From the IMG/VR virus record IMGVR_UViG_3300042540_001822, positions 62,001-126,000 of that record: 64,000 nucleotides of DNA. The stretch is one strand, 5' to 3'. Below are positions 3,023 to 43,312 of this stretch, piece after piece (positions within the stretch are counted from its first letter, which is position 1; each line of letters opens with the position of its first letter). The notes below the pieces were generated by a model. It made no database searches and was not told where the DNA came from. It worked only from the letters and a program-made list of their open reading frames with translations. The position numbers were made by a program, and so were the translations under genes.

Positions 3023-3409
3023 TTAAAGAATACCAGACCTAAAAAAGAAAGGATCCCCTGTTAGAATTCCTTGTGCCAAATTTCGTCTAATAATAAACGA
3101 TCCTTCTTCTAATGTCTTTACTTTCATTGGCGGGTATTCCAAATCATTAACCATTCTCAAAGGCATTACCATAGGCCTTGTTGACAACATGGTTTTTTCC
3201 CAAATATCAGAAATTAAAATTTGAAACCTTTCTTGGAGGTCCAAATTTGTGTCTTGAGATTCCAGTAAAAAGTTTAAACTTCTGATTGGACCGAAGTGTG
3301 AATTAACAAACGAAATAAGTGTTGGGCTTGGAGTTGATGAGATCATATAATTTTTTATTTGATCCAAAGGTAAAAAGAAAATTAAGGAATAAAAAATGAA
3401 ACCCCACAA
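3023..3409 (-). CDS. Hypothetical protein (start probably MISSTP)
   Basis: ORF track. Confidence 0.55.
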   Translation of the reverse strand: MWGFIFYSLIFFLPLDQIKNYMISSTPSPTLISFVNSHFGPIRSLNFLLESQDTNLDLQERFQILISDIWEKTMLSTRPMVMPLRMVNDLEYPPMKVKTLEEGSFIIRRNLAQGILTGDPFFFRSGIL

Positions 3410-3452: not shown

Positions 3453-4043
3453 TTACTTCCGGTTCAAACCAAGTCCTTGAAGAACCATGGTGTTGGTTGG
3501 GCGATTTTCCATGTGGAGAAAAGCCATGTCCAAAACCTCTTCTGACAGGTACCAACCATCAATCACCCTGGAAACAAATCCTGGGGATTTCTTGCAGATG
3601 TCAGAGATTGACTTGATGTCACCTCTCTGCAACCTTTGGTTGACAAAGGCAAGTTTGAAGGTGTACTTGTTGTACCCATTCATCTTTGACTTCTCCTTTG
3701 GCTTCCGGCCCCTTTTTGGGGTAGATGGAGCAATTGGGAAAAGGGTGGCAACTGGAGGTTCTGGAATTTGAACCTTGGGTTTCTCTGCCACCTTAACCAA
3801 TTTTGGTTTGCGAGCAGGCTTGGTGTCGAACTTCTTGATGGAACCTTCAACCTGGGACTTGGTGGATCTTTTGATCCTGCCTTTCAAACCCAGAATCAAT
3901 TTCCGGGAATAAATGGAGGTGAGGGTTCTGCCAAAGAAGTTGGCGATTTCCGCGGAGGAAAATCCTCCTGCGACCATGTTCTTCAGTTGGGTGTCCTGCT
4001 CAGGAGTCCAACGAGAATGATGGGTTTGGGGTCTTTTTGCCAT
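3453..4043 (-). CDS. Two-HTH DNA-binding protein (N-terminal Myb/GcrA-like HTH, C-terminal HTH)
   Basis: RWTPEQDTQLKNMVAGGFSSAEIANFFGRT; C-terminal RGDIKSISDICKKSPGFVSRVI resembles 31428..31631; start moved to MAKRPQ behind TATATTTG at 4086-4093. Confidence 0.65.
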   Translation of the reverse strand: MAKRPQTHHSRWTPEQDTQLKNMVAGGFSSAEIANFFGRTLTSIYSRKLILGLKGRIKRSTKSQVEGSIKKFDTKPARKPKLVKVAEKPKVQIPEPPVATLFPIAPSTPKRGRKPKEKSKMNGYNKYTFKLAFVNQRLQRGDIKSISDICKKSPGFVSRVIDGWYLSEEVLDMAFLHMENRPTNTMVLQGLGLNRK

Positions 4044-4085
4044 ACGTGATGGGTTTAAAGGGTGGAAGAAATAAAATTGACAAGG

Positions 4086-4093
4086 CAAATATA
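4086..4093 (-). promoter_or_regulatory. Bacteroidota-type -7 promoter box TAnnTTTG (representative copy)
   Basis: Also at 2268, 2908, 7717, 9228, 55867, 58894, 61428 (minus) and 20875 (plus), each just upstream of a gene start. Confidence 0.7.
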
Positions 4094-4240
4094 CGATGGT
4101 TTGATTGATAAAAAAAACAAATTTACCAAAAATGCCATTAAAAAATAAAAAAAAATTTATTAATGGACTTAACTTGTTGTAAATGAACAACTTAAGAAAA
4201 CCAGCAAATTAAATTTTTTTTCTGTGCCTACGACAAACAA

Positions 4241-4549
4241 TTATAATAGTTGAATTTCCTTTTTTACATCTAACCAAAATTGGTAGTTACCGAACTCCTC
4301 TTTTAATTTTCCGTTTTCTTCCAAGTAATTCACTATTGGCTCAAATTCAATAGCACTATCTCCAAAAGCTTTTCGCCATTGAGCAACGGTCACCATTTGG
4401 TTATCTTCCATTCCGTCAATTCTAAAAAATCCATAGTGAGCATCTAACCACTTGCCCTCTACAACATGACCACTTAAGTTTGTGAATTTGAATTTAAGTG
4501 AGTTAAATCCTTTTTCTTTAGCATATTCTTGTAGTTCTAAAATTCTCAT
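4241..4549 (-). CDS. Hypothetical protein (start MRILEL)
   Basis: ORF track; the longer upstream extension runs through the repeat element. Confidence 0.7.
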   Translation of the reverse strand: MRILELQEYAKEKGFNSLKFKFTNLSGHVVEGKWLDAHYGFFRIDGMEDNQMVTVAQWRKAFGDSAIEFEPIVNYLEENGKLKEEFGNYQFWLDVKKEIQLL

Positions 4550-4607
4550 TTTAATTGGGTTAGGGGTTGGGCGTGGATGAATGTGCGAGTTATCGGCAAC
4601 CCTACGA

Positions 4608-4868
4608 CTACTCTGTAGCAAGTTTTATAGCATTGACTAAAGGCATTACTCCTTCGCCTCCATTTTGAGAAAGCATAAATTCAGGATAACGACCTTCATC
4701 TGCCAATTTCTTAAATTGTTCTTTTGCCCATTCACAAGCAGCAAGTAATTCATCAGCTACTTTCTTATCTACATACTCGCCTGTTTGGTCATTTGGTTTA
4801 CTTACTTTGTATCCTACAAATAATTGCGGGCTGTAAGTTAATTTTAAAGGTTCTTTACAATTGTTCAT
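4608..4868 (-). CDS. Cassette hypothetical protein
   Basis: Lies between GTTATCGGC (4589) and GCCGATAAC (4910). Confidence 0.7.
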   Translation of the reverse strand: MNNCKEPLKLTYSPQLFVGYKVSKPNDQTGEYVDKKVADELLAACEWAKEQFKKLADEGRYPEFMLSQNGGEGVMPLVNAIKLATE

Positions 4869-5223
4869 TTTATGTTTGTTTTTAAGTTAATAATTCCGAA
4901 AGAAGGGCAGCCGATAACAGCACCTACCAAAAAGGTGGGGGTTGGGGGGTTAGACAAATATGCGAGTTATAAGCAATTATTTTGCCTCAATACCATCCCA
5001 ACAAGACTTACAGCAGTATCCATCAAACTTTTTGTTGTTATGAAAGGTGTGACAGTTACGGCAAAATAACTGTCCGCTTCGCCTTATAACAACAGGTTTG
5101 TGAAATAAACCGCTTTCGATTTGTCCGTAAGTTGGTAGTGATTTGAATGTTCTGTTATTCTTCATATATTTCGTTGTTAAATGTTTACTTCACAAACCTG
5201 CAAACCGTTAGCAGAAATAAAAA

Positions 5224-5379
5224 TTACTCCTGCAATGCTTCCAACTCATATCGTACCAAAGCCATTTCGTCAATTGCTCTGATTTGTTCTTCAATCTTTT
5301 CACGTTCTTTAATCAATCTGATTATTTCTTCGTTGTCTGTTACTTTTGTCCAATCTATCATGTCAGTAATTTTTATCAT
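5224..5379 (-). CDS. Small hypothetical protein MIKITDMIDWTKV...
   Basis: 51-codon ORF read by hand (below the track cutoff). Confidence 0.6.
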   Translation of the reverse strand: MIKITDMIDWTKVTDNEEIIRLIKEREKIEEQIRAIDEMALVRYELEALQE

Positions 5380-5894
5380 TTGTGTTTAATTTTGTATTAG
5401 TGCGCTCTAAACAGAATTTACAATTCCCTTTGTGGGTTAATACTACCAATCAATTTCAATCGAATATTCACCTGCTTCAATTAAACCTCTTTTATAAAGG
5501 TCATTTGCAACAGTATGTATGTCTGGATAAAAATTTCTATCCCACCATAACTTAATACCATAGTCGGTTCTACCAGCAACAGGTTCATTAGGGTCACGTT
5601 CTAACCACTTTTCAAATTTTACACCCATAGTTTTACCATTTATTATTTCAGGTATTTCATCATTCATTTCATCATCACGAGTGTATTCACTTGGTATTGT
5701 AAGATGGAATATTCCCCTTGACCAACAACCATTTTGTTGTTGAAAACTATACGGCTTACCGTAAGTGTCTGAAACTAATTTATTCCAATCACTCACTTCA
5801 ATCATTTTTACATTTTTAATTTTTATCATTTGTGTTTAATTTTGTATTAGTGCGCTCTAAACAGAATTTACAATTCCCTTTGTGGGTTAATACT
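5367..5894. repeat. 78-bp perfect direct repeat (5367-5444 and 5817-5894)
   Basis: Identical taatttttatcatttgtg...gtgggttaatact flanking gene 5443..5829. Confidence 0.9.
5443..5829 (-). CDS. Hypothetical phage protein
   Basis: ORF track. Confidence 0.75.
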   Translation of the reverse strand: MIKIKNVKMIEVSDWNKLVSDTYGKPYSFQQQNGCWSRGIFHLTIPSEYTRDDEMNDEIPEIINGKTMGVKFEKWLERDPNEPVAGRTDYGIKLWWDRNFYPDIHTVANDLYKRGLIEAGEYSIEIDW

Positions 5895-6130
5895 GTTTGG
5901 TTACCCCAATCGCCAAGTAAATACTCGCAACTATCTACCTCTACTATTATTAATGGGTCTTTGTCTTTTCTTACCACAAAGCCGGATGTGTTTACTTCGC
6001 GGCAACCGCAAGAAAGAATAGTCATTAGTAGTGTACTGATAAAGGGGAATGTTGGTTTCATAAGGTGAAATAAGCAATAAGACACAAGATGGCAAGCACA
6101 ACGAATAGTGCCAAAAAAACAGGTAAGCAC
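5816..6130 (-). CDS. Hypothetical (lipo)protein, probable start MKPTFPF
   Basis: Hydrophobic stretch with ILSC lipobox-like motif; VDSCEY...THKGNCKFC. Confidence 0.55.
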   Translation of the reverse strand: MLTCFFGTIRCACHLVSYCLFHLMKPTFPFISTLLMTILSCGCREVNTSGFVVRKDKDPLIIVEVDSCEYLLGDWGNQTVLTHKGNCKFCLERTNTKLNTNDKN

Positions 6131-6216
6131 CCGTATTCTTCAATCATGTGACCGATGGCGTTTAACTGGGATAGAATCATGGGTTTAGGGGTTTGGGGGT
6201 TAGACAAATATGCGAG

Positions 6217-6450
6217 TTATACGCAACCTTGACGAAAAACAATCAACTGACTGCGACATTCTTCATAAAGCCCATAATCATAGTCATCTCCTTTTCTTGA
6301 TTTGTTTAAAAAGAAATCTACTGCGACTATTCCACTTTCAATTGCTAATAATCTATGGGCTTTCATATCACCCACTCCAAATTGTGCTATTAAAAAACTA
6401 TCAATCAATGATTGTGCTATTTCTTTTGCGTGTTCTGTTCTGTTGTACAT
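6217..6450 (-). CDS. Cassette hypothetical protein
   Basis: Its stop codon is supplied by the GTTA core at 6216. Confidence 0.7.
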   Translation of the reverse strand: MYNRTEHAKEIAQSLIDSFLIAQFGVGDMKAHRLLAIESGIVAVDFFLNKSRKGDDYDYGLYEECRSQLIVFRQGCV

Positions 6451-6561
6451 ATTTATTTTGTTTTAAAATTATAATCAAAAAGGCTGCTTATAACAGCAGT
6501 TTGGCAAGATGTGGGGGTTGGGGGAAGGAAAACTGGACAAATAAAGGAGTTACCTGCAAGG

Positions 6562-6936
6562 CTACGAAACTGCATAGACAGACATTCCTATAATAACCAG
6601 AGCGTGTAACAATTGGTCAAATCCAAACACAATCCAATGCCATTTATTAGCAGGTGATTGTAGTGAAGGAAACCAGCCATTCATTCTACCTTTCCAAACA
6701 TCAATTATAAAGTGTGTTACCCATTGGAATATTACTAAGTAAGCCCAATCGTTTGTAAAGCCAATAAACCATCCTAAAACAAGCGACATTAACATAGTGT
6801 GCATTGCAGCGTGAATGAATATTGGAAACAATGGCTTTCCAAGTCGCTTTGCATTAAGCATCCAAGCATTTGATAAATGTGTGTAATCTGCTAAAAAATG
6901 GCAGATAAATAATCCGATTAAAATTTGTGTTTGCAT
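6562..6936 (-). CDS. DUF3307-like membrane protein
   Basis: HFLADY...H...THFIID...GFDQLLH motif pattern. Confidence 0.8.
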   Translation of the reverse strand: MQTQILIGLFICHFLADYTHLSNAWMLNAKRLGKPLFPIFIHAAMHTMLMSLVLGWFIGFTNDWAYLVIFQWVTHFIIDVWKGRMNGWFPSLQSPANKWHWIVFGFDQLLHALVIIGMSVYAVS

Positions 6937-6998
6937 TTGTATTTTAAATTAAATCGTTTAGGGGTTGGACAAATAAACGAGTTAGTGATAATTAAAAA

Positions 6999-7247
6999 TC
7001 ACAAAATTGTACAATTTTCAATTTCATAAACCTTTGGATGTTTTTCTTTTAGTTTATTTATAGCATTTTCATAATTTTCAGCATAAATTAATTCATAACA
7101 AATTGGATATTCGTCACCAATACCTAAACTAAAAGAAAGTAAATAAATATTAACCTTTTGTGAATTTTGTGATTTTTCACTCTCCCTAACATCAGATATA
7201 TTCAATTCCGAGTTTTCTTTAAAACTCTTAATTATGTTCTTTTCCAT
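6999..7247 (-). CDS. Cassette hypothetical protein
   Basis: Reads across the TAAC core (LNISDVRES). Confidence 0.65.
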   Translation of the reverse strand: MEKNIIKSFKENSELNISDVRESEKSQNSQKVNIYLLSFSLGIGDEYPICYELIYAENYENAINKLKEKHPKVYEIENCTIL

Positions 7248-7272
7248 ATTCTATATTTTTTATCATCAACCG

Positions 7273-7680
7273 TTATGAGAAATGTTTTGTCAAAGCATCC
7301 TCTAATATTTGTATAGCTGTTTCTAATCCGCATTCCATCCCTTCTCTCCATTGTCCTTCACTATAATCTAATGGGGGTGATAATTGCCTACTACTTTCAA
7401 GTTGGCTTTGTAAATCTGCCAAAACACTTCTCATAACATCAGGTTGTTGCAATGTGGTTTCGGTGGTATGTGTTACATCTTCCATTTTAAGAAATTTTTC
7501 GTATTTTTCTTCCGTCATTCCGATTGCTTGTCTTTCCCATTCATGTTCACCTTGTTCACCATAAATTTCATATTCAGTCATAGGAGATTTTTTAACATCA
7601 TTGACCATAAAAATAAAAAAAGCAATTCCTATTAAAAGGAGAACAACCAATCCAATAACTGCTAGTAATGTGATATCCAT
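7273..7680 (-). CDS. Membrane-anchored hypothetical protein spanning an attC-like core
   Basis: N-terminal TM; LQQPDVMRS crosses TTCTCATAAC; stop from GTTA at 7272. Confidence 0.7.
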   Translation of the reverse strand: MDITLLAVIGLVVLLLIGIAFFIFMVNDVKKSPMTEYEIYGEQGEHEWERQAIGMTEEKYEKFLKMEDVTHTTETTLQQPDVMRSVLADLQSQLESSRQLSPPLDYSEGQWREGMECGLETAIQILEDALTKHFS

Positions 7681-7825
7681 AAAATTTACTTAGTTTTATT
7701 TTCGTATTTGCGTTTGCAAATATACAAATAAGTTTCGAGATTTCCAAATCTTACCTACAAAAATACATCATATTCCTGGTGTGTGGATGAAGGGAAATTG
7801 GACAAATAAACGAGTTATAGCACAT

Positions 7826-7981
7826 TTAATTATCGCTTAACGACTGGCCGAAAACTATACAAGCTAAACATACAGGAAGATACCATTTCCAATTATCTGT
7901 TTGTGTTATCCAAAGCGATGATAAAATCATCCCACTTGTGATTATTGCAACTGTGTTTAAAAATTTCTTTACTTTTTTCAT
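7826..7981 (-). CDS. Small 2-TM cassette protein MKKVKKFLNTVAII...
   Basis: 51-codon ORF read by hand between cores 7814 and 8006. Confidence 0.55.
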   Translation of the reverse strand: MKKVKKFLNTVAIITSGMILSSLWITQTDNWKWYLPVCLACIVFGQSLSDN

Positions 7982-8066
7982 CGTTTTAAAATTAACGCCT
8001 TATAACAGCAAATTTGGAAAATGTAAAAATTGGTTTCATGGGTTAGGGGTTGGGCGAATGTGCGAG

Positions 8067-8306
8067 TTAGGTGCAAGGCTCTGCCAACCATCCACCACAA
8101 GCAGACCAAACCACCCAACCACCATAAGCAACGTGCATACCGCCAAAAAACTTTGAAACAGATACAGACCAAGTGAAGTAACCTTCTTCAAGTGTTTGTC
8201 CTGTATCAAAATGTTTAAACTTATTACCCAAATGTTTTTTGGCTCGTTCCAAGACAAAAGCCCTGCAACTAACACGGGTTTGGCAAGATTGAGGGGTTGG
8301 TTTCAT
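8067..8306 (-). CDS. Cassette hypothetical protein
   Basis: Starts in the G-rich spacer, crosses the TAAC core, stops at GTTA 8066. Confidence 0.5.
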   Translation of the reverse strand: MKPTPQSCQTRVSCRAFVLERAKKHLGNKFKHFDTGQTLEEGYFTWSVSVSKFFGGMHVAYGGWVVWSACGGWLAEPCT

Positions 8307-8365
8307 GGGTTAGGGGTTGGGGGTTGGGAAGGAAAACTGGACAAATAAACGAGTTATGTGCAATT

Positions 8366-8608
8366 TTAAGACACCCACTTATGACACCTTTTACAAGCGA
8401 TTTCTTTTGGCTCGTTAGTGTCAGGCGTGTATTTCCTATGTCCTACAATTTTGCACCATAAAGGCAAAAAAGTATCTTCAAACATTAGTTTGCGCTGGTG
8501 TTTTATTACAGACCAAAAACGGTCATAGTAATATTTTTTGTTGTCAGGATACTTTCTTGCTAATCGCAGTATCCAAAATAAATCGCAAGTTTCTCTTGAT
8601 GTTGACAT
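8366..8608 (-). CDS. Hypothetical protein with C-terminal CxxxGH...CxxC
   Basis: WCKIVGHRK...CKRCH. Confidence 0.65.
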   Translation of the reverse strand: MSTSRETCDLFWILRLARKYPDNKKYYYDRFWSVIKHQRKLMFEDTFLPLWCKIVGHRKYTPDTNEPKEIACKRCHKWVS

Positions 8609-8691
8609 TTTTTTATTGATTTATGGTTTGGAAAAGTGTGTATTTACCGCATTTTGCAATAATAGTTTTTACTTTAGGCGCGATAAGTTTC

Positions 8692-8973
8692 TTAATTCAA
8701 AATGAATTTAAGAACCAAAATCAAAATTAGAATTAAACCAAACCCAAGAACGCTCACCAAAATTACAATACGTTCTCCCATAGATGATATCCCTTCGAAT
8801 TGGATTTTGCCCTCATCTTGTTTGTATGGAATAAGTTCCTCCCTCATTAATTCCCTCCAAAGTTCGGAATTACACTCTTCATTATCACATAAGAAGAAAA
8901 AACCAAACTCTCCTACATTCACCCTTCTTTGGGCTTGCTCTTGGCACTGACAACAGGTGGATTGTTGTTTCAT
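8692..8973 (-). CDS. Hypothetical Cys-rich protein with C-terminal TM
   Basis: ORF track. Confidence 0.6.
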   Translation of the reverse strand: MKQQSTCCQCQEQAQRRVNVGEFGFFFLCDNEECNSELWRELMREELIPYKQDEGKIQFEGISSMGERIVILVSVLGFGLILILILVLKFILN

Positions 8974-8996
8974 AAGGATATGTGGGTTTAATTGTG

Positions 8997-9069
8997 TGAT
9001 CCCGACTGGACTCGAACCAGTAACCTACTGCTTAGAAGGCAGTTGCTCTATCCATTGAGCTACGGGACC
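8997..9069 (-). tRNA. tRNA-Arg (anticodon TCT)
   Basis: GGTCCCGTAGCTCAATGGATAGAGCAACTGCCTTCTAAGCAGTAGGTTACTGGTTCGAGTCCAGTCGGGATCA folds as a cloverleaf with CTTCTAA loop and GTTCGA T-loop. Confidence 0.95.
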
Positions 9070-9289
9070 TGGATTTATTTTGGATCCATTTTTTCGTATT
9101 CTTTTTTGACCTGTGCCTGAAAATTTTCCACGTTTGCAGAGAATTTACCGTAGGCAGCTCCTGACATGAAAGCAAGAATTCCAAAAAGAATGAAGGTAAT
9201 TAGTAACAGCATAAGTTTGTTTTTTTACAAATATAAGAAAAAAACTAATATGATCGATTTCCAAATCAAAAAAATGCGGTCCTACGACC

Positions 9290-9667
9290 CTACACATCGG
9301 GATTAATTTCAGCCCAAAACAACTTTACAACACTTCCCTTTATTTCTCCATACACACAGTCACTAAATTCGTAGGCTGGCACAAAGGAATTCAAATCTAC
9401 CCAAGCCCAATCAGCATCATGGTTTGGGAATTGGGCCATGTACTGACCCTCTTCGTTTACCATCAATAATTCTCTTTTTTTGTCATCCAAAAAAGTTCCC
9501 CCGGTGTATATGTGTTTTTTCACATCCAAAATTGGTGGTGTTAGCATTTCGGGCTTACAAACATTGTCCTCTAATAAATTGCGGAAAAAAGAAATTGGAT
9601 TCATGTTACTTATACAGCAGAACCAACATTTGATTTCGTTTCCACCTCCTTTAAAACCTCGATCCAA
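9290..9667 (-). CDS. Hypothetical protein (start probably MNPISF)
   Basis: ORF track. Confidence 0.6.
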   Translation of the reverse strand: MDRGFKGGGNEIKCWFCCISNMNPISFFRNLLEDNVCKPEMLTPPILDVKKHIYTGGTFLDDKKRELLMVNEEGQYMAQFPNHDADWAWVDLNSFVPAYEFSDCVYGEIKGSVVKLFWAEINPDV

Positions 9668-9825
9668 TACAGATGCATCACAATCAACTCTGGGTGGATT
9701 TCGGTACAGTTAATTAAGGATTGTATGTTTTTTAAACAATCATTTACTGTTTTTTTACCCAACATCTCTTTTGCCTTCTGGGAGGGAGAAAGTGCAGGCA
9801 AATCAAACAAAACAGATTGGCTCAT
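9610..9825 (-). CDS. Hypothetical protein
   Basis: ORF track; overlaps the sigma factor stop. Confidence 0.6.
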   Translation of the reverse strand: MSQSVLFDLPALSPSQKAKEMLGKKTVNDCLKNIQSLINCTEIHPELIVMHLYWIEVLKEVETKSNVGSAV

Positions 9826-10706
9826 AGACTTGGTTCAAATTGAATTCTTCTTGCTCCGGATTTCATTTTCGTGATCGCCTTACGGTGAATGATCTCTGCC
9901 TTCTGTTTTGAAATTCCAAATTTCAAACCAATTTCTATGTATGTCAATGGGTAATCATATCCCACTCCATGATGTAATGTCACGATGTCTTTTTCTAAAG
10001 GAGTTAAAGAAAGCAACAACTTATTAACCATCTTCTTTTCGTCATCCTTGTTCAACACATCTTCTGGTGTATCTTCACCGGAATCAATTATCTCATACAG
10101 GTTAGAGTCTTCTGCTGTTTCTAGGGGCTTGTCCAAAGAGACAGACACAAAATTTTGGCCTGTCACAAATTTAAAGGTATCAAAGGTTAGATTTTCTCTT
10201 TTGAGTTCTTCCTTCATGTATTCAAATACCTCCATCTCTGTGGCCTCCCTACCAATCCTAGCAAAAAGGTAACATTTCGCATCCTCTGCTTTTTGAACTA
10301 AACGTAATTGATTGGGCGGGATGTACACTGTTCTTTTAAACTTCTGTATGTAAAGAATCATTTCCTTTCGGATATGCCAAACAGCAAAGGAGATAAATCT
10401 AAATCCCTTGGTTGGATCAAATCTATCTGCTGCATCCACCAGCCCCACGTTGCCCACAGCCACCATCTCCTGCTGTGATTCTTCATTACTAGCATACATC
10501 TTGGCAACCGATAACACAAACCTCAAATTTGAGGTAACCAGCTTTTCTCTGGCTTTGGCATTACCATTAAAGGCCTGGGTGGCTATTTCGTATTCCTCAT
10601 CTGGTGACATGATGGGTATTCGGGATACCTCCCTCAAATACACCTGGGTTGAAAACTTCTGGCTGAGAGTAAATGTCTCAACTTTTTTAAATTGTCTCAT
10701 GCCCAT
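9822..10706 (-). CDS. Sigma-70 family RNA polymerase sigma factor (RpoD/RpoS-like, regions 1.2-4)
   Basis: YLREV, AREKLVTSNLRFVLSVAK, GLVDAADRFDPTKGFRFISFAVWHIR, region-4 HTH. Confidence 0.9.
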   Translation of the reverse strand: MGMRQFKKVETFTLSQKFSTQVYLREVSRIPIMSPDEEYEIATQAFNGNAKAREKLVTSNLRFVLSVAKMYASNEESQQEMVAVGNVGLVDAADRFDPTKGFRFISFAVWHIRKEMILYIQKFKRTVYIPPNQLRLVQKAEDAKCYLFARIGREATEMEVFEYMKEELKRENLTFDTFKFVTGQNFVSVSLDKPLETAEDSNLYEIIDSGEDTPEDVLNKDDEKKMVNKLLLSLTPLEKDIVTLHHGVGYDYPLTYIEIGLKFGISKQKAEIIHRKAITKMKSGARRIQFEPSL

Positions 10707-11489: not shown

Positions 11490-12870
11490 TTCGAATTTTA
11501 GAGGGTGTAAAACATACTATCTTAGCACCATACTATATCTATTGTTTCGATTTTTCGGGTCCACAGAGGACCTGCCCACAGGTACAGGACTTGGTGGGAT
11601 CAGTGACACAGGGGGTTTCGGGATTGGGGGACATCGGGAGGGGCTGGGATCCAAAGAGGGCCGAGCGGACTCTGGCCCATAGCCGCCGGAGTAGAGGGGG
11701 AAGTGGAGGAAAGTGGAACATGGGTATATTTTGTGTTGAGGCGCCGTGCGCGTCGCGTGCACGCGCTGGGCTTGAGTATGTTAGCATCATACTATGTCAA
11801 ACCCCAAAAATTTCACCCGGGCCCGGGGTACGTTTTGTTTGTTTCTGTCTTATCTTTGGATTGTGTTTCTCATATGTGTTTTGCCCGTGTCGGTCTCCGG
11901 ATCGGCACGGGATTTTTGTTTGTCCCAGATTTCCAGGATAATCTCAGCCCAACGAAAACCTTTCGTTATAACACAACATGTTTACTTAGAATGACTTACA
12001 AATCGTAACAACAAAAAAATTTACCGGGCGGGCTGACCCAGATTAACCTCGGACTAACCTCGGCCCATCCGGGGCGGAGTTAAATTGGAAATCCGGGTTA
12101 TCCTCCACAAGCCTCCACTTAACCCCACTTTTTACCACACGGAGGTGCTAGGAAAAAAAATCGAGGTTAGCGGGGATAAATTTGGGGACAACTGGGAGAA
12201 CTTGGTTAACCCCGCCCTACAGGGGTAAAACGAGGCTTTCCCGGACGATCGGGTCTGGACTCATGGCCCTGGGTGGTTTTCAAGGCCTCAGAGGGGCTTC
12301 CACAAGGGGGATTTTTCCGCGAAACCTTGAGGGCAGAGTCCTTTAAAGAATCCCTTTCTTCTTGTCTGTCATGTCTGGGCCAGGAGGGCCAAGGAGTCCT
12401 TTAAAGAATCCGATTCTTCTTTGTGATGTCTGGACCAAGGAGTGTCGGGAAGTCCTTTAAAGAATCCCTTTCTTCTTGTCTGTTATGTCTGGGCCAAGGA
12501 GATCCCTACAGTAACCTTTAGCTACCTATGTGTCTCCTTGTCTTCTTATATGTCTTTGATGTCTGGGCAGAGTCCTTTAAAGAATCCGATTCTTCTTGTC
12601 TTCTTGTATGTCTTTTATGTCTGGGACAGTAGATCTTTCTGAGTACGTGTGTCTTCTCTTGTGTGTTCTCTTTATACTTTGCATGTTCGGGTTAAAACAT
12701 GTTAGATGTGGTGTAGTCCTTCTGTGTCTCCTTGTTCGTCTGTGTGTTCTTTTCTTCATTCTTAAATTGACATTGGATTTTGTTCTTTTTTATTTGGAAG
12801 GGCCGGGGTTCTTTCTGTGTTCCCAATTTTGTCCCCCTCGATTTTTGAGGAACACGTTTGATGCAAATGA
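11490..12870. other. GC-rich non-coding strand-switch region (candidate origin, terminus or packaging region)
   Basis: Genes diverge on either side; no plausible ORFs; palindromes, phased CCAC repeats, iteron-like repeats and a strong T-over-A skew. Confidence 0.55.
12337..12600 (+). repeat. Four copies of AGTCCTTTAAAGAATCC(CT/GA)TTCTTCTT
   Basis: Copies start at 12337, 12395, 12451, 12571; palindromic CTTTAAAG core. Confidence 0.85.
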
Positions 12871-14322: not shown

Positions 14323-14428
14323 TTGGGTAAAGCGAGATTTATTTTAATTTTGGGGCCGGGGTTCTTTCGGTGTTCCCAATTTTGTCCCCCTCGACTTCGA
14401 ATGACTGCGGTTGGGAATATATAAGGAC

Positions 14429-15247
14429 ATGAAACACCTCCAATCCTTTTCCCTGTTCGAAGCCCAAACTTCTGTCCTGACCACAGACCAAGAGGCATTT
14501 TTGAATGAATACATCAAAGGAGCATGGTCGGTCAATCCAACAACAGGTCTGGTCGATGTGGAGGGAAATTTTGCTTGTAGTTCCAAAAGGCTGAAGTCTC
14601 TGTCGGGCATCTCGTTCGGACATGTGAGTGGGAATTTCGCCTGTTTCAACAACCAACTGACCTCCCTGAAAGGAGCACCACAGACGGTGGGTGGGGGTTT
14701 CGATTGTTCTTATAACGATCTCACTTCCCTGGAAGGAGCACCACAGACGGTGGGTGGGGATTTCAATTGCTTTTATAATTACAATCTTAAATCCTTGGAA
14801 GGAGCACCTCGGACTGTGGGTGTGAATTTCGATTGTTCTTATAACGATCTCACTTCCCTGGAAGGAGCACCTCAGACGGTGGGTGGGGATTTCAATTGCT
14901 TTTATAATTACAATCTTAAATCCTTGGAAGGAGCACCTCGGACTGTGGGTGTGAATTTCCTTTCTGACAAATTCCAATTAGAAGAAGGCGAATGGAACAT
15001 GCAAGGATGGCTGGAGGTTTTGAACACAGGAACGGAAGAAGCCAAAAAATTGATTTCCACCCTGCCATGGCTACAACCGGACTGGTGGAACTTGGAACTC
15101 CAACGGGATCCCGGTAAAACAGTTCATCTATTGGGGTCTTTATGGAAACATATGCCAAAGGACATGCAATCTGCAATTAAGATTCCCGGGGGATATGAAG
15201 ATGATTTCGAACTGTTTTCTGGATTTAACGAGCTGGGCTTGTTTTAG
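14429..15247 (+). CDS. LRR-like variable-module protein 1 (5 modules)
   Basis: FxCxxNxLTSLEGAPQTV repeats; start moved to MKHLQ; internal 129-bp duplication. Confidence 0.9.
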   Translation: MKHLQSFSLFEAQTSVLTTDQEAFLNEYIKGAWSVNPTTGLVDVEGNFACSSKRLKSLSGISFGHVSGNFACFNNQLTSLKGAPQTVGGGFDCSYNDLTSLEGAPQTVGGDFNCFYNYNLKSLEGAPRTVGVNFDCSYNDLTSLEGAPQTVGGDFNCFYNYNLKSLEGAPRTVGVNFLSDKFQLEEGEWNMQGWLEVLNTGTEEAKKLISTLPWLQPDWWNLELQRDPGKTVHLLGSLWKHMPKDMQSAIKIPGGYEDDFELFSGFNELGLF

Positions 15248-15262
15248 AGGATATATAGGAGA

Positions 15263-15886
15263 ATGAAACACCTCCAATCCTTTTCCCTGTTCGAAGCCCA
15301 AACTTCTTTCCTGACAACCGACCAAAAGGAATTTTTAAATGAATGCACCAAAGGAGCATGGTCGGTCAACCGGCAGACCGGTCTGGTCAATGTGGAGGGG
15401 AATTTTGACTGTAGTTTCAAATCACTAAAGTCTCTGCCTGACATCTCGTTCGGACACGTCAGTGGTCATTACGGCTGTTTCAACAACCAACTGACCTCCC
15501 TCGAGGGAGCACCCCAGACGGTAGGCGGGGGTTTCTACTGTTCCAACAACAAACTGACCTCCCTCGAAGGATCCCCACAGACTGTGGGTGGGGATTTTTG
15601 GTGTGACGAATTCGAATTAGATTCAGGCAAATGGAACATGCAAGGATGGGTGGAAGTTCTGAACACAGGAACACCAGCAGCCCAAAAATTGATTTCCACC
15701 CTTCCATGGATCCAACCGGACTGGTGGAACCTGGAACTCCAACGGGATCCCGGGAAGACGGTTCATCTATTGGCCACTGCATGGAATCACATGCCAAAGG
15801 ACATGCAATCTGGAATTAAGATTCCTCGGGGATATGAAGGTGATTTCGAACTGTTTTCCGGATTTGACGAGCTGGGCTTGTTTTAA
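15263..15886 (+). CDS. LRR-like variable-module protein 2 (2 modules)
   Basis: Paralogue; ends SGFDELGLF. Confidence 0.9.
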   Translation: MKHLQSFSLFEAQTSFLTTDQKEFLNECTKGAWSVNRQTGLVNVEGNFDCSFKSLKSLPDISFGHVSGHYGCFNNQLTSLEGAPQTVGGGFYCSNNKLTSLEGSPQTVGGDFWCDEFELDSGKWNMQGWVEVLNTGTPAAQKLISTLPWIQPDWWNLELQRDPGKTVHLLATAWNHMPKDMQSGIKIPRGYEGDFELFSGFDELGLF

Positions 15887-15903
15887 AGGATATATATAAG
15901 GAC

Positions 15904-16716
15904 ATGAAACACCTCCAGTCCTTCGTACTTTTCGAAGCCCAAACTTCTGTCCTGACACCCCGCCAAAATAAATTTTTGAATGGATGCACCAAAGAAACAT
16001 GGTCGGTCAACCGGCAGACTGGTCTGGTCGATGTGAAGGGAAATTTTGACTGTAGTTTCAAATCACTAAAGTCTCTGCATGGCATCTCGTTCGGAAACGT
16101 CAGTGGTCATTTTGGCTGTATATACAACCAACTGACCTCCCTGAAAGGATCACCCCAGACGGTGGGTGGGAATTTCAACTGTTCCACCAACCGACTGACT
16201 TCTCTAGAAGGAGCACCGCAGAAGGTGGGTGTGAGTTTCGACTGTGGTGTAAACAAATTGACCTCCTTGAAAGGATCACCACAGACGGTGGGTGGGATTT
16301 TCTCCTGTTACAACAACCGACTGACCTCTCTCGAAGGAGCACCTCAGAAGGTTGGCTCGAATTTTTCTTGTACTTTTAACGATCTCACTTCCCTGAAAGG
16401 AGCACCTGAGACGGTGGGTGGGTATTTTACGTGTGACGAATTCAAATTAGATTCGGGTGAATGGAACATGGAAGGATGGGTGGAGGTTTTGAACACAGGA
16501 ACACCAGCAGCCCAAAAATTGATTTCCACCCTTCCATGGCTCCAACCAGACTGGTGGAACTCGGAACTCCAACGGGATCCAGCGAAAACAGTTCATCTAT
16601 TGGGGTCTTCATGGAAACATATGCCAAAGGACATTCAATCTGCAATTAAGATTCCTCGGGGATATGAAGGTGATTTTGAATTGTTTTCTGGATTTGACGA
16701 GCTGGGGTTGTTTTAA
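15904..16716 (+). CDS. LRR-like variable-module protein 3 (5 modules)
   Basis: Paralogue. Confidence 0.9.
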   Translation: MKHLQSFVLFEAQTSVLTPRQNKFLNGCTKETWSVNRQTGLVDVKGNFDCSFKSLKSLHGISFGNVSGHFGCIYNQLTSLKGSPQTVGGNFNCSTNRLTSLEGAPQKVGVSFDCGVNKLTSLKGSPQTVGGIFSCYNNRLTSLEGAPQKVGSNFSCTFNDLTSLKGAPETVGGYFTCDEFKLDSGEWNMEGWVEVLNTGTPAAQKLISTLPWLQPDWWNSELQRDPAKTVHLLGSSWKHMPKDIQSAIKIPRGYEGDFELFSGFDELGLF

Positions 16717-16731
16717 AGGATATATAGAGGG

Positions 16732-17544
16732 ATGAAACACATCCAATCCTTTTCTCTGTTCGAAGCCCAAACTTCTGTCCTGACCACAGACCAAGAGGCA
16801 TTTTTGAATGAATTCACCGACGGGACCTGGTCGGTTAATCCAACAACTGGTTTGGTGGACGTTCAGGGTGATTTTAACTGTTTCGGTCAAGGTCTGAAAT
16901 CACTTCGAAAAATATCTTTCGGTCATGTGAGTGGGTATTTCTCCTTTTCCGACAACCAACTGACCTCCCTGGCAGGGGCACCCCAGACGGTGAGTGGGCA
17001 TTTCTTCTGTTCCCGCAACCAACTGACCTCCCTTAAAGGAGCACCCCAGACGGTGGATGGGCCTTTCTACTGTTACAAAAACAAACTGACCTCCCTCGAA
17101 GGAGCACCTCAGACGGTGTATGGGGATTTCCGGTGTTACAATAACCAACTGACCTCCCTAGAAGGAGCACCACAGACGGTGGGCGGGGATTTCTCTTGCT
17201 ACAACAACCAACTGACCTCCCTGGAAGGAGCACCTCAGACGGTGGGTGGGTATTTTACGTGTGACGAATTCCAATTAGATTCGGGTGAATGGAACATGGA
17301 AGGATGGCTGAGGGTTTTGAAAACAGGAAAAACAAAAGCCAAAAAATTGATTCTCACCCTGCCATGGCTACAACCGGACTGGTGGAACTCGGAACTTCAG
17401 CGGGATCCAGGGAAAACCGTTCATCTATTGGGGTCTTTGTGGAAACATATGCCAAAGGACATGCAATCTGGAATTAAGATTCCTCGGGGATATGAAGGTG
17501 ATTTTGAATTGTTTTCTGGATTTGACGAGCTGGGGTTGTTTTAA
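16732..17544 (+). CDS. LRR-like variable-module protein 4 (5 modules)
   Basis: Paralogue. Confidence 0.9.
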   Translation: MKHIQSFSLFEAQTSVLTTDQEAFLNEFTDGTWSVNPTTGLVDVQGDFNCFGQGLKSLRKISFGHVSGYFSFSDNQLTSLAGAPQTVSGHFFCSRNQLTSLKGAPQTVDGPFYCYKNKLTSLEGAPQTVYGDFRCYNNQLTSLEGAPQTVGGDFSCYNNQLTSLEGAPQTVGGYFTCDEFQLDSGEWNMEGWLRVLKTGKTKAKKLILTLPWLQPDWWNSELQRDPGKTVHLLGSLWKHMPKDMQSGIKIPRGYEGDFELFSGFDELGLF

Positions 17545-17559
17545 AGGATATATAGGAGA

Positions 17560-18384
17560 ATGAAACACCTCCAGTCCTTCGTACTTTTCGAAGCCAAAGC
17601 TGCTCGTCTTCCTTCTGGACTTACTCAAAGTCAAGAAAATTTCTTGAACCGACACACCAGAGGAACATGGTCTGTTAATCCAACGACCGGTCTGGTAGAT
17701 GTTTTTGGGGAATTTTACTGTTTCGGTCAAGGTCTGAAATCACTTCGAAAAATATCTTTCGGTCATGTGAGTGGGAATTTCGACTTTTCTTCCAACAAAC
17801 AAACCTCTCTGAAAGGAGCACCCCAGACGGTTAAACGTCAATTCAATTGTTCTGATAACGAACTGACCTCCCTGGAAGGAGCACCTCAGGAGGTAGGTAG
17901 GAGTTTCTACTGTTACAAAAACAAACTGACTTCCCTAGAAGGATCACCTAAGACTGTAGGCGGTGATTTCGACTGTGCTATCAACCATCTGACTTCCCTT
18001 AAAGGAGCACCACAAACGGTGGATGGTCGTTTCTACTGTGATAGGAACAAATTAACCTCCCTGGAAGGAGCACCTCAGACGGTGGTTGGGAATTTTAAGT
18101 GTGACGAATTCGAATTAGATTCAGGTGAATGGAACATGGAAGGATGGCTGAGGGTTTTGAAAACAGGAAAAACAAAAGCCAGAAAATTGATTTGCACCCT
18201 TCCATGGCTACAACCGAACTGGTGGAACTCTGAACTTCAGCGGGATCCCGGTAAAACAGTTCATCTATTGGGGTCTTTGTGGAAACATATGCCAAAGGAC
18301 ATGCAATCTGGAATTAAGATTCCTCGGGGATATGAAGGTGATTTTGAATTGTTTTCTGGATTTGACGAGCTGGGGCTGTTTTAA
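17560..18384 (+). CDS. LRR-like variable-module protein 5 (5 modules)
   Basis: Paralogue. Confidence 0.9.
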   Translation: MKHLQSFVLFEAKAARLPSGLTQSQENFLNRHTRGTWSVNPTTGLVDVFGEFYCFGQGLKSLRKISFGHVSGNFDFSSNKQTSLKGAPQTVKRQFNCSDNELTSLEGAPQEVGRSFYCYKNKLTSLEGSPKTVGGDFDCAINHLTSLKGAPQTVDGRFYCDRNKLTSLEGAPQTVVGNFKCDEFELDSGEWNMEGWLRVLKTGKTKARKLICTLPWLQPNWWNSELQRDPGKTVHLLGSLWKHMPKDMQSGIKIPRGYEGDFELFSGFDELGLF

Positions 18385-18399
18385 AGGATATATAAGGGC

Positions 18400-19278
18400 A
18401 TGAAATATCTCGTTTCATTTGTCCTTTTCGAAACCGAAAAGACTTCAGGCCTGACACCCGGCCAAGAGGCATTTTTGAATGAATGCTCCAGCAAGACCTG
18501 GTCGGTTAACCGGCAGAATGGTCTGGTCGATGTGCAAGGAGGTTTTACTTGTAGTTTCAAATCCCTAACGTCTCTGCCTGACATCTCGTTCGGAAACGTC
18601 AGTGGTCATTTCATCTGTTCCAACAACCAAATGACCTCCCTTGATGGAGCACCACAGAAGGTGGGTGGGATTTTCTCCTGTGCCGGCAATCAGCTGACCT
18701 CCCTAAAAGGAGCAACCCAGAATGTGGGCGGGAATTTTTGGTGTCACCAAAACCAGCTGACCTCCCTGGAAGGAGCACCCCAGACGGTGAACGGGAATTT
18801 CCACTGTTACTACAACCGACTGACCTCTCTCGAAGGAGCACCCCAGACGGTAAAAAAGAATTTCCACTGTTACAAAAACCAACTGACCTCACTTAAAGGA
18901 GCACCTGAGACGGTGGGTGGGAATTTTGAATGTTCCAACAACAAACTCCAATCCCTGGAAGGAGCACCTCATACGATAAACGGGGGTTTTCGGTGTGACG
19001 AATTCCATTTATATTCAGGCAAATGGAACATGCAAGGATGGGTGGAGGTTTTGAACACAGGAACACCAGCAGCCCAAAAATTGATTTCCACCCTTCCATG
19101 GATCCAACCGGACTGGTGGAACCAGGAACTCCAAAGGGATCCTGGGAAGACGGTTCATCTGTTGTCTACCATGTGGAACCACATGCCAAAGGACATGCAA
19201 TCTGCAATTCAGATCCCTCGGGGATATGAAGGTGATTTTGAATTGTTTACTGGATTTGACGAGCTGGGCTTGTTTTAA
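18400..19278 (+). CDS. LRR-like variable-module protein 6 (6 modules)
   Basis: Paralogue. Confidence 0.9.
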   Translation: MKYLVSFVLFETEKTSGLTPGQEAFLNECSSKTWSVNRQNGLVDVQGGFTCSFKSLTSLPDISFGNVSGHFICSNNQMTSLDGAPQKVGGIFSCAGNQLTSLKGATQNVGGNFWCHQNQLTSLEGAPQTVNGNFHCYYNRLTSLEGAPQTVKKNFHCYKNQLTSLKGAPETVGGNFECSNNKLQSLEGAPHTINGGFRCDEFHLYSGKWNMQGWVEVLNTGTPAAQKLISTLPWIQPDWWNQELQRDPGKTVHLLSTMWNHMPKDMQSAIQIPRGYEGDFELFTGFDELGLF

Positions 19279-19295
19279 AGGATATATATAGGAGA

Positions 19296-20171
19296 ATGAA
19301 ACACATTCAATCCTTTTCCCTGTTCGAAGCCCAAACTTCTGTCCTGACAACCGACCAAGAGGAATTTTTAAATGAATGCACCGACGGGACCTGGTCGGTT
19401 AATCCAACAACAGGTCTGGTAGATGTTAAAGGAGATTTTGATTGTAGTTCCAAAAGGCTGAAGTCTTTGTCGGGCATCTCGTTCGGACATGTCAGTGGGT
19501 ATTTCTTCTGTTCCAACAACCAATTGACCTCCCTGAAAGGAGCACCTCAGACGGTGAGTGGGACTTTCTTCTGTACTGACAACAAACTGACCTCCCTGAA
19601 AGGAGCACCACAGACGGTGGGTGGGAGTTTCTACTGCGGTGAAAACCAATTGACCTCCCTGGAAGGTGCACCCCAGACGGTGAGTGAGGATTTTTGGTGT
19701 CACCAAAACCGACTGACCTCCCTCGAAGGAGCACCCCAGACGGTGGGTGGAAGTTTCAACTGTATGGACAACCGGCTGACCTCCCTGGCGGGAGCACCTC
19801 AGACGGTGGATGTGGATTTCAATTGCTTTCATAACAATCTTAAATCCTTGGAAGGAGCACCTCAGAAGGTGGGTAGGAATTTTAAGTGTAACGGATTCCA
19901 ATTAGATCCAGGCAAATGGAACATGGAAGGATGGCTGGAGGTTCTGAACACAGGAACACCAGCAGCCCAAAAATTGATTCTAACCCTTCCATGGCTACAA
20001 CCGAACTGGTGGAACTCTGAACTTCAGCGGGATCCCGGTAAAACAGTTCATCTATTGGCCACTGTATGGAATGACATGACAAAGAACATGCAATCTGCAA
20101 TTAAGATTCCTAAGGGATATGAAGATGATTTCGAACTGTTTTCTGGATTTGACGAGCTGGGCTTGTTTTAA
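19296..20171 (+). CDS. LRR-like variable-module protein 7 (6 modules)
   Basis: Paralogue. Confidence 0.9.
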   Translation: MKHIQSFSLFEAQTSVLTTDQEEFLNECTDGTWSVNPTTGLVDVKGDFDCSSKRLKSLSGISFGHVSGYFFCSNNQLTSLKGAPQTVSGTFFCTDNKLTSLKGAPQTVGGSFYCGENQLTSLEGAPQTVSEDFWCHQNRLTSLEGAPQTVGGSFNCMDNRLTSLAGAPQTVDVDFNCFHNNLKSLEGAPQKVGRNFKCNGFQLDPGKWNMEGWLEVLNTGTPAAQKLILTLPWLQPNWWNSELQRDPGKTVHLLATVWNDMTKNMQSAIKIPKGYEDDFELFSGFDELGLF

Positions 20172-20186
20172 AGGATATATTAGGAC

Positions 20187-37662: not shown

Positions 37663-38061
37663 TCAGGTTGGATCGTGTGTGGATAATTTCCATTTCCACC
37701 CTTCAATCATCAATGAAGCAGTGGCATAATTCGTGGCTAGTGGCACATTGTAAACATTGCAAACTCTTAGAAGCATATTTACGTCCACAATGTGAGGATG
37801 AACAGCCAAGGGGTCGATAAAAAACACGACCCCATCCACATGTCCGTCTGCTATCATGGCGGCGATTTGGGCGTCACCCCCCATAGGTCCAGACTTCTTT
37901 TTCTCTACCCGAATCCCAGCATGTTCGATGTGTGTACCTGTGGTACCGGTGGCCACGATGTTGTGGAGGCAAAAGAAATCCATTCTTTTCATGATGAAAG
38001 CAACTATGTCAGCTTTTTTCCCATCATGTGCAATAACTGCTATGTTTAGCGGTTTGTTCAT
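37663..38061 (-). CDS. mgsA: Methylglyoxal synthase
   Basis: IAHDGKK, ATGTTG, SGPMGGDAQI, FFIDPL..PH.VD, PLATN.ATA. Confidence 0.93.
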   Translation of the reverse strand: MNKPLNIAVIAHDGKKADIVAFIMKRMDFFCLHNIVATGTTGTHIEHAGIRVEKKKSGPMGGDAQIAAMIADGHVDGVVFFIDPLAVHPHIVDVNMLLRVCNVYNVPLATNYATASLMIEGWKWKLSTHDPT

Positions 38062-39083: not shown

Positions 39084-39160
39084 ACCATATTTTAGTGTAA
39101 AAATACGAAAATTTTCTTGGAAAAATCTCCCAAAAAAATAATTTTAAGCTATTTTATAAT

Positions 39161-43251: not shown

Positions 43252-43312
43252 TTTATTTTTCTTGGAACAAATCTTGAGTTTGTAAATTAAACTCAAGATA
43301 AATTTGTTTTTT

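Follow-up and report, generated by a model that had tools for sequence, protein, structure and literature searches.

Does the array of small genes at 4.5–8.4 kb of the window represent an integron-like cassette array in a phage, or a different kind of exchangeable gene module? The window, the 64,000 nt of positions 62,001 to 126,000 of IMG/VR record IMGVR_UViG_3300042540_001822, is part of a 219-kb uncultured phage contig, and the region 4.5–8.4 kb holds small minus-strand ORFans. An earlier note had proposed that the segments of this region start with GTTA and end with TAAC, with the two ends of the same segment being complementary, and had interpreted this as an attC-type array of shuffling cassettes feeding the early region. 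We confirmed the observation, which is stronger than originally seen, whereas the integron interpretation was only partly supported. Small early genes sit between matching inverted-repeat arms next to a conserved promoter-like box, and these modules are swapped whole between many related phages, which resembles an integron, although the parts that define one were not found.

All six proposed pairs were present with the matches claimed, at 4589/4910 (9/9), 4966/5083 (8/8), 6216/6486 (8/9), 6981/7183 (7/8), 7272/7428 (10/10) and 8066/8264 (9/10), and the inverted repeat claimed at 5093–5110 and 5183–5200 (17/18) was also found (16/17 in register 5095–5111/5183–5199). The complementarity runs further than was noted, typically over 15 bp, and for instance 7272–7289/7420–7437 is 18 bp with one G.T. 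Three points needed correction. The segments do not tile the region, as copies of the repeat at 6549 and 8353 have no partner and the 7814/7997 pair is weak (6/8). The note placed all genes antisense to canonical cassettes, but TAAC..GTTA reads the same on both strands, so these cores do not decide that claim. Finally, the statement that the window has no integrase holds for the 40 largest ORFs scanned.

The conserved GAGTTA repeat is a 25-nt box on the gene strand, TTGCnnaTAAC-TCGyWTATTTGTCyA (here called the M1 box), of which the window has 8 copies and 5–6 partner sites. The 11 nt before each TAAC are the reverse complement of a GTTA-N11 site just upstream of the same gene, so that each module consists of a GTTA-arm, one ORF and an arm-TAAC. 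The features of the array are as follows, with L-numbers denoting related loci in other contigs:

4573–4603, minus strand: M1 box 1, with the 3′ arm plus TAAC at 4589–4603 and the promoter-like right half at 4573–4588; the C-rich leader 4551–4572 precedes the ATG at 4549.
4904–4918, minus strand: 5′ arm (GTTATCGGCTGCCC on the gene strand) pairing with 4589–4603 and bracketing ORF 4608–4868 (86 aa).
4950–4980, minus strand: M1 box 2, with its 5′ partner at 5076–5090, inside ORF 4977–5165.
5095–5199, minus strand: H-type linker hairpin (arms 5095–5111/5183–5199, 16/17 with one G.T on the gene strand), with a geometry as in relatives, abutting the 5′ arm at 5076–5090; the loop holds the ATG of ORF 4977–5165.
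5200–5221, minus strand: orphan 3′ arm ending in TAAC (5207–5221), followed by a type C flank GGTTTGC (5200–5206), after ORF 5224–5379; the same arm sequence occurs in a complete cassette of L011.
5367–5894, minus strand: two perfect 78-nt direct repeats (5367–5444, 5817–5894) flanking ORF 5443–5829, each containing a start codon and the first four codons (MIKI), the footprint expected from insertion of a gene plus one repeat by recombination.
6200–6230, minus strand: M1 box 3, with its 5′ partner at 6480–6494, bracketing ORF 6217–6450 (77 aa); the C-rich leader is 6183–6199.
6533–6563, minus strand: M1 box 4, without a 5′ partner, following ORF 6562–6936 (DUF3307 membrane protein).
6965–6995, minus strand: M1 box 5, with a degenerate 5′ partner at 7176–7190, inside ORF 6999–7247; the L016/L040 orthologue has a perfect 26-bp stem.
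7272–7437, minus strand: module with an 18-bp stem (7272–7289/7420–7437) and a type C flank; a 52-codon reading frame runs exactly from the ATG in GTTATG to the TAA in TAAC, in frame within ORF 7273–7680; an orthologue is present in L232.
7717–7748, minus strand: the only canonical Bacteroidota-type promoter match (TTTG-N20-TATATTTG) in the array, part of the 'type B' linker after M1 box 6.
7798–7828, minus strand: M1 box 6, with a weak 5′ partner at 7991–8005 (6/8), following ORF 7826–7981.
8050–8080, minus strand: M1 box 7, with its 5′ partner at 8259–8273, bracketing ORF 8067–8306 (79 aa); the same module occurs in L054 and L226 with different flanks.
8337–8367, minus strand: M1 box 8, without a partner, following ORF 8366–8608; the C-rich leader is 8307–8336.
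9822–10706, minus strand: sigma-70 family factor gene (regions 1.2, 2 and 4), upstream of the array on the gene strand and a candidate reader of the M1 box.

Complementarity no better than chance had been named beforehand as grounds for rejecting the proposal, and we compared the pairs with controls. Within the window alone the statistics are modest, with four pairs reaching at least 8/10 beyond GTTA/TAAC against a mean of 0.39 in 1000 shuffles (P=0.004), and permutation of the arms among sites giving P=0.018. Across about 190 related loci the signal is overwhelming, as 20 of 60 cassettes match their own partner at 8/10 or better against 1.4% of 3532 mismatched controls, and 50 stems were found against 0–4 in shuffled sequence. 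The 52 oriented distinct stems carry 40 different variable hexamers and are 91% Watson-Crick, with a conserved G/T at position 11 (G.T in 41 of 45 stems). Homologous ORFs (46% amino acid identity) have entirely different arms, each self-complementary. Each stem brackets one ORF of 54–127 aa with the stop codon 0–25 nt before TAAC, and the stems span 106–349 nt with two longer (about 690 and 733 nt), with essentially no empty hairpin. The long-range stem has a predicted probability above 0.6 in 17 of 26 sense RNAs, and linker hairpins carry 35 G.U against 10 A.C on the sense strand when both are scored alike. A search of 3500–9500 against the Rfam 15 covariance models, at E up to 1, gave only a tRNA-Arg at 8996–9069.

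The box is confined to 4.5–8.4 kb of the window, but recurs elsewhere in the same genome and in at least 100 other viral or metagenome contigs next to unrelated genes. In representative genomes of 185,579 bacterial and archaeal species there were only 58 single matches, none with the C-rich extension. The consensus was derived from 52 distinct sites, and the box is followed by a C-rich leader and the next start codon 36–55 nt later, whereas in some loci a canonical host-type promoter lies between, with the start codon then 98–138 nt away. The box therefore behaves like a promoter or regulatory box, and it lies 1.2 kb downstream (on the gene strand) of the phage sigma-70 family gene, although its promoter activity was not assayed, and the spacing between the TTG and the TATTTG-like element does not fit the host-type −33/−7 promoter.

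The earlier note had singled out insertion or deletion breakpoints at the cores in related genomes as the deciding evidence, and such breakpoints were found. Whole units come and go with junctions exactly at TAAC or GTTA in four independent comparisons, with only 4–5 nt of shared sequence; L005 and L144, and L011 and L216, differ by one and two whole units, respectively. Other module junctions lie at several places in the shared linkers and C-rich leaders, 11–98 nt away from the cores. The M1 variant travels with the upstream gene in some comparisons, and the linker travels with the downstream gene in others.

Our preferred reading, which we hold only tentatively, is that the region is a hyperplastic early-gene array of a phage probably infecting Bacteroidota, built from self-contained promoter-plus-panhandle expression modules. 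The tail of each gene, stop codon included, forms the left half of the next box, and is the reverse complement of a GTTA-N11 site 4–40 nt upstream of, or within the first codons of, the same gene. Each small ORF is thus enclosed by a 15-bp stem with the invariant GUUA/UAAC at its base, and one helical turn away a conserved A-G-U over U-U-A triplet with G opposite T. We propose that the arms pair within the sense strand, which is the mRNA, and also the lagging-strand template if replication starts at the divergent region near 12.5 kb. In RNA the resulting panhandle would insulate each module's transcript, mark its end and protect it, while on DNA the folded modules would bring neighbouring TAAC cores together, so that whole units (linker plus arms plus ORF) could be deleted or inserted precisely by general recombination or replication slippage. 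Homologous exchange in the shared linkers would shuffle modules between phages. The anatomy, the covariation, the pairing potential, the distribution across phages and the unit junctions were established by our analysis, but promoter function, the nucleic acid that folds and the role of the fold are inferences, made without expression or structure-probing data. Several findings do not sit easily with this reading. Outside position 11 the arms show no excess of G.U over A.C (11 against 10), which would be expected of an RNA stem under long selection; some 5′ arms lie inside coding sequence and some linker hairpins carry a promoter in their loop, so not every transcript would contain both halves. 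The unit indels with 4–5 nt of microhomology are more precise than ordinary homologous recombination would give, and the same outer 12–13-nt arm pair occurs around unrelated ORFs.

The closest precedent is the promoter-early stem-loop (PeSL) cassettes of T4-type phages (PMC2839356, PMC4122927), in which conserved short regulatory repeats lie between small non-essential ORFans of hyperplastic regions and are the points of exchange by which genes are inserted, deleted and replaced as modules, with direct repeats flanking single ORFs. The array described here shares the conserved promoter-like repeats between ORFs without known function, as well as indels and replacements between relatives with junctions inside the repeats, and the 78-nt direct repeats around ORF 5443–5829; whether mini-circles form by recombination between repeats was not examined. 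A PeSL has a local stem-loop terminator next to a host sigma-70 promoter, but no short hairpins were found here. What differs from PeSL cassettes is that the stem is long-range and encloses the whole ORF, that its arm sequence varies and covaries, that it has an invariant GUUA/UAAC base and a conserved G/T position, that the box does not match the host promoter consensus, and that several junctions are exact at a 4-nt core. Pairing between the 5′ leader and 3′ end also closes small-protein bacterial mRNAs and could control their translation, processing or decay, as in hok fold-back inhibition, and in icaR by 5′/3′ UTR pairing (PMC3868564), but those are single genes with their own specific sequences, whereas here the architecture is repeated and exchangeable, with conserved stem ends across dozens of unrelated ORFs. 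The processing stems flanking 16S and 23S rRNA, cut by RNase III, are likewise long-range inverted repeats bracketing a functional unit inside a longer transcript, but the unit bracketed here is protein-coding, the stems are only 15 bp, and no RNase III gene was found in the window. Conserved intergenic repeats that act as promoters are present in halovirus HF2 (PMC8707807), which is an archaeal virus, and no gene-bracketing complementarity is described there.

Alternatively, a dedicated structure-specific recombination system, integron-like in logic but not a member of that family, is unlikely but not excluded. An unidentified phage or host enzyme may recognise folded sense-strand DNA by the GTTA/TAAC base, the G.T at position 11 and the linker hairpin, and excise and insert units at the TAAC core. 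This would account for the exact junctions, and in 12 of 34 5′ flanks in relatives the linker consists of TAAC, 3–4 nt, a 15–23-bp hairpin, 1 nt and GTTA, a geometry that recalls the R box, spacer and L box. The arms are near-perfect Watson-Crick with one conserved mismatch, which could mark the strand as extrahelical bases do in attC (PMC5027507), and the conserved elements lie one helical turn apart. However, no integrase, resolvase or transposase was found among the 40 largest window ORFs, or among the 25 domain families listed for 49 recurrent neighbour proteins of related loci, and the four TAAC..GTTA linkers of the window do not fold better than shuffles. The junctions away from the cores and the inconsistent linkage of M1 variant and linker also argue against it, and precise deletion between short repeats at the base of folded stems can arise by replication slippage without any recombinase. 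In its furthest form, which we consider improbable, lytic phages that probably infect Bacteroidota may carry their own structure-addressed gene-cassette system, in which units of a linker hairpin plus GTTA-arm, ORF and arm-TAAC fold in the sense strand, and the variable hexamer acts as an address pairing the two ends of one unit; this would be a functional analogue of integrons that evolved in viruses.

Non-autonomous, MITE-like mini-transposons, with GTTA..TAAC as terminal inverted repeats around a passenger ORF and a transposase acting in trans, are very unlikely. The modules are found in different contexts with junctions at their outer ends, the termini are conserved and the arms are DNA-type near-perfect repeats, but transposase-bound repeats are normally conserved, whereas the arms differ between copies. 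No target-site duplication was visible in the listed flanks (5′ flanks end in ..gct, ..ctt or ..gat, and 3′ flanks start with tcg or ggt), all copies point the same way as the genes and sit only at gene boundaries, and no transposase was found among the proteins scanned.

A true integron or CALIN recombined by an IntI integrase is a remote possibility. As in attC arrays (PMC5027507, PMC2727003), small, mostly unknown genes are arranged with GTT../..AAC cores, the start of each module is complementary to its own far end, whole-unit indels fall at the core, recognition would be by structure rather than sequence, and some relatives have a hairpin between TAAC and GTTA. However, attC is an imperfect hairpin of one strand, 57–141 nt, with R and L boxes, an unpaired spacer and extrahelical bases (PMC5027507), whereas the four window linkers have z from −0.5 to +0.7 as ssDNA on either strand and −1.1 to +1.5 as RNA, and no extrahelical bases were identified, also in relatives with hairpin linkers. 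The complementarity is 15 bp, against the 7-nt R box of attC, and encloses the ORF. There is no single attI and no common promoter driving promoterless cassettes, as eight copies of the box lie in 3.8 kb, each 36–55 nt before a start codon, and the motif was found in viral or metagenome contigs but, beyond the single matches above, not in bacterial genomes. No IntI gene was found among the proteins scanned, but about 130 kb of the contig was not seen, which leaves the presence of such a gene unsettled. The cores gave a mixed picture against the RYYYAAC/GTTRRRY consensus with crossover in AAC and do not decide the matter either way, since GTTA/TAAC resembles it and is invariant, but position 5 is T in 18 of 26 stems where a purine is expected, and four junctions fall at or within TAAC/GTTA while others lie elsewhere.

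Invertible segments (invertons or a shufflon) are equally remote, as despite the 15-bp inverted repeats flanking segments of 106–349 nt, and some ORFs reading through the 5′ arm from a shared N-terminal leader, every one of the 45–52 oriented modules has the ORF, the G/T position and the box in the same relative orientation, no flipped copy of any module was found among relatives, and no invertase was found among the proteins scanned. Chance complementarity between short AT-rich motifs, for which only the modest excess within the window speaks, is refuted by the large excess over shuffled and mismatched controls, with covarying arms in independent contigs.

The window is 100% identical to pieces of the IMG/VR contig IMGVR_UViG_3300042540_001822, which is 219,475 bp. 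Near and distant DNA searches of annotated phage records detected distant relatives of only one gene (5443-5829), at about 70% nucleotide identity, in uncultured phages of 636-735 kb, and no motif was present there. The regions upstream of start codons in the window are A-rich and G-poor and lack a Shine-Dalgarno signal, which, given the nature of translation in Bacteroidota, points to that host group by inference. The canonical Bacteroidota promoter pattern was not enriched in the window (5 matches versus 3.1 expected), and the host assignment therefore rests on the A-rich, G-poor start regions and on the conserved 'type B' linker (a linker that contains a canonical promoter match). From about 12.0 kb downwards all genes are on the minus strand, and within 4.2-8.7 kb they are small (40-135 aa) and without known function, with only DUF3307 and PHROG families of unknown function being matched, while a search of Rfam gave no family. 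Other features in the window were:

118-188, 546-616, 1537-1607 and 3336-3406, a second, different intergenic repeat family upstream of minus-strand genes, reading like a host-type promoter on the gene strand (..TACATTTAGATATATAAAAA)
4551-4572, 4931-4949, 6183-6199, 6511-6532, 8041-8049 and 8307-8336, telomere-like C-rich leaders (CCCCAACCCCTAACCC) directly before start codons, in a genome whose other start regions are A-rich
8996-9069, minus strand, tRNA-Arg (anticodon TCT) between the array and the sigma gene
9822-10706, minus strand, sigma-70 family factor gene (regions 1.2, 2 and 4), upstream of the array on the gene strand
12324-12616, four to five copies of a roughly 40-nt repeat (core AGTCCTTTAAAGAATCC) in the divergent region between the minus-strand and plus-strand genes, coinciding with the minimum of the cumulative GC skew, a candidate replication origin or control region
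14411-20810, plus strand, tandem array of about eight paralogous ORFs of 207-292 aa, with 82-89% identical 300-nt repeats and no Pfam match for the one tested
23476 and 23821, two near-identical sequence copies 345 nt apart inside plus-strand genes, in a region shared at 89% identity by L035 and L055 (L numbers denote related loci)
38058-39940, minus strand, T4 Rnl1-type RNA ligase next to a 2OG-Fe(II) oxygenase
43304-48740, plus strand, block of glycosyltransferase-like genes
54321-55538, minus strand, Y-family DNA polymerase
61996-63126, minus strand, thymidylate synthase with an insertion of about 110 aa relative to the Pfam model

The observation made in the earlier note is confirmed, as all six pairs of complementary segment ends listed there are present at the stated positions. 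On the gene (minus) strand these resolve into two elements, of which M1 (8 copies) reads TTGCnnaTAAC-TCGyWTATTTGTCyA, and is followed by a C-rich tract of the CCCCAACCCCTAACCC type and then by the next ATG, whereas M2 (5-6 copies) reads TG-GTTA-N11 and is located upstream of, or within the first codons of, the preceding gene. The strand complementary to the C-rich leaders has four or more G runs and is prone to forming a quadruplex. The complementarity is between the variable nucleotides before TAAC in M1 and those after GTTA in the M2 on the other side of the same gene. A complementarity no better than chance had been named beforehand as grounds for rejecting the cassette reading, but within the window four pairs reached at least 8/10, compared to 0.39 expected (P=0.004), and P was 0.018 when the arms were permuted among sites.

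A search with a 17-nt M1 pattern retrieved 69 viral loci and 120 metagenome loci, most of which carry the extended motif next to unrelated genes. The same pattern gave only 58 single matches in the genomes of 185,579 species, which we consider chance matches, none with the C-rich extension, and the element is therefore phage-specific. In the related loci, own-pair complementarity was at least 8/10 in 20 of 60 cassettes, compared to 1.4% of mismatched controls, and a stem finder gave 50 hits versus 0-4 in shuffled sequences. The enlarged set contained 52 oriented distinct stems from 34 records, with 40 different hexamers and a median span of 241 nt.

Within a module, positions 1-4 of the stem (GUUA/UAAC) are invariant, positions 5-10 vary and stay Watson-Crick, position 11 is G in the 5′ arm and T in the 3′ arm in 41 of 45 stems, and positions 12-15 pair again. 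Inspection of the listed arms showed that T11 is conserved in 3′ arms irrespective of whether these are followed by M1-right (the part of M1 after TAAC) or by a type C flank. Each stem brackets one ORF of 54-127 aa, with the ATG usually 19-55 nt after the G of GTTA and the stop codon 0-25 nt before TAAC, although in some modules the ORF reads through the 5′ arm from a shared N-terminal leader. The spans are 106-349 nt, with two longer (about 690 and 733 nt). A search for empty short hairpins found essentially none, with a 30-nt 'empty' hairpin (GTTAGATG..CATATAAC) in L237, located next to a perfect 22-nt palindrome (TAACTCGTTTA|TAAACGAGTTA; gene strand about 880-940), being the only such case seen. 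The long-range stem was predicted with a probability above 0.6 in 17 of 26 sense RNAs.

The sequence following TAAC is M1-right in 32 of 52 stems, and a type C flank (GGTTGGG..) in 15. In relatives, type C flanks begin a 15-23-bp hairpin that ends one nucleotide before the GTTA of the next module (12 of 34 distinct 5′ flanks), and some of these hairpins share a loop sequence but have different stems. The inner inverted repeat at 5093-5200, described in the earlier note as one site retaining a full inner repeat, is one of these linker hairpins.

Across 52 distinct M1 sites about 25 nt are conserved, and the next long ORF starts 36-55 nt after TAAC, or 98-138 nt after TAAC where a canonical TTTG-N20-TAnnTTTG promoter lies between. 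The TATTTG part of the box resembles the -7 element of Bacteroidota promoters, but on inspection its spacing to the TTG does not fit. Promoter function is inferred and not shown. The sigma-70 family gene at 9822-10706 lies upstream of the array on the gene strand, but no sigma gene was found in the other motif-bearing loci, which are short fragments.

The interpretation of the region as an attC-type cassette array is partly supported. When compared with the defining features of integrons (PMC5027507, PMC2727003), the four TAAC..GTTA linkers of the window did not fold better than shuffled sequences, either as RNA or as ssDNA on either strand. No integrase was found among the 40 largest ORFs of the window, nor among the 25 domain families listed for 49 recurrent neighbour proteins of motif-bearing loci, which are replication, methylase and anti-defence genes. 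Furthermore, there are many boxes rather than one attI, and the complementarity is 15 bp and encloses the gene. Membership of the integrons is therefore not supported.

The cassette idea is nevertheless not empty. Insertion or deletion breakpoints at the cores in related genomes had been put forward in advance as the requirement for this reading, and where the same module occurs with flanks of different type, identity indeed stops exactly at the core. This was seen for window 8066-8273, and L226, against L054; for L005 against L144, with L005 having one extra unit of linker plus module before the same M1-right and leader; for L011 against L216, which differ by two extra units; and for L037 against L237, where identity starts exactly at GTTA. 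These sites share only 4-5 nt. Other junctions fall 11-98 nt from the cores, inside shared linkers, and a single crossover point was not obtained since most junctions could not be placed within the shared box. The C-rich leaders are indel junctions in relatives, with one indel lying between direct repeats of the leader including ATGAAAC, and in the window ORF 5443-5829 is flanked by perfect 78-nt direct repeats that include the start codon. This mixture fits exchange at any shared sequence, as described for the PeSL (promoter-early stem-loop) cassettes of T4-type phages, plus a precise process at the stem bases.

Our early counts suggested a general excess of G.U on the sense strand, but an unbiased recount showed that in the arms this rests on position 11 alone, with the other positions giving 11 G.U versus 10 A.C and being 91% Watson-Crick. 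In contrast, the linker hairpins do show an excess, with 35 G.U versus 10 A.C (p = 2e-4). If replication starts at the divergent region near 12-12.9 kb, as may be indicated by the repeats and the GC-skew minimum, the sense strand is also the lagging-strand template, and therefore sequence alone does not separate folding of single-stranded DNA from folding of mRNA. The conserved base and the conserved A-G-U/U-U-A triplet lie one helical turn apart, suggesting, by inference only, recognition by a protein on one face of the helix.

We tentatively favour promoter-plus-panhandle expression modules, which are exchanged as units by general recombination and structure-stimulated slippage, while the main rival, a dedicated structure-specific recombinase, is considered unlikely but not dismissed. 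Either way, no description of gene-bracketing covarying repeats in phages was found in the literature that we could search, and the architecture differs in this respect from the phage regulatory cassettes already known, to which we assign it. Phage hyperplastic regions are where new host-takeover and counter-defence genes appear, and how such genes are acquired and kept expressible is largely unexplained outside the T4 PeSL case. Here a simple, searchable grammar, consisting of a box, a C-rich leader, and GTTA-arm, ORF, arm-TAAC with a conserved G/T one helical turn from the base, marks individual gene modules in well over a hundred uncultured phage contigs. It delimits ORFans precisely, predicts transcript ends, shows whole-unit gain and loss, and offers a concrete test of whether module exchange in phages needs a dedicated enzyme or only folded nucleic acid plus general recombination. 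If the arms work in RNA, this would be a repeated use of 5′-3′ end pairing as a modular expression device.

The 12 nt before GTTA in the 5′ flanks of many modules often read like the mirror image, and not the complement, of M1-right (for example tttttatacgcT|GTTA compared with TAAC|Tcgcatatttgt), for which we have no explanation. Many different genes, in L004, L009, L012, L018 and many other loci, begin with the same nucleotides, ATGAAACCAACCCC (MKPTP..), and the first codons therefore belong to the shared linker, while a conserved gene starting MKPTPTDFRRWQIHIRKECV follows M1 in many contigs.
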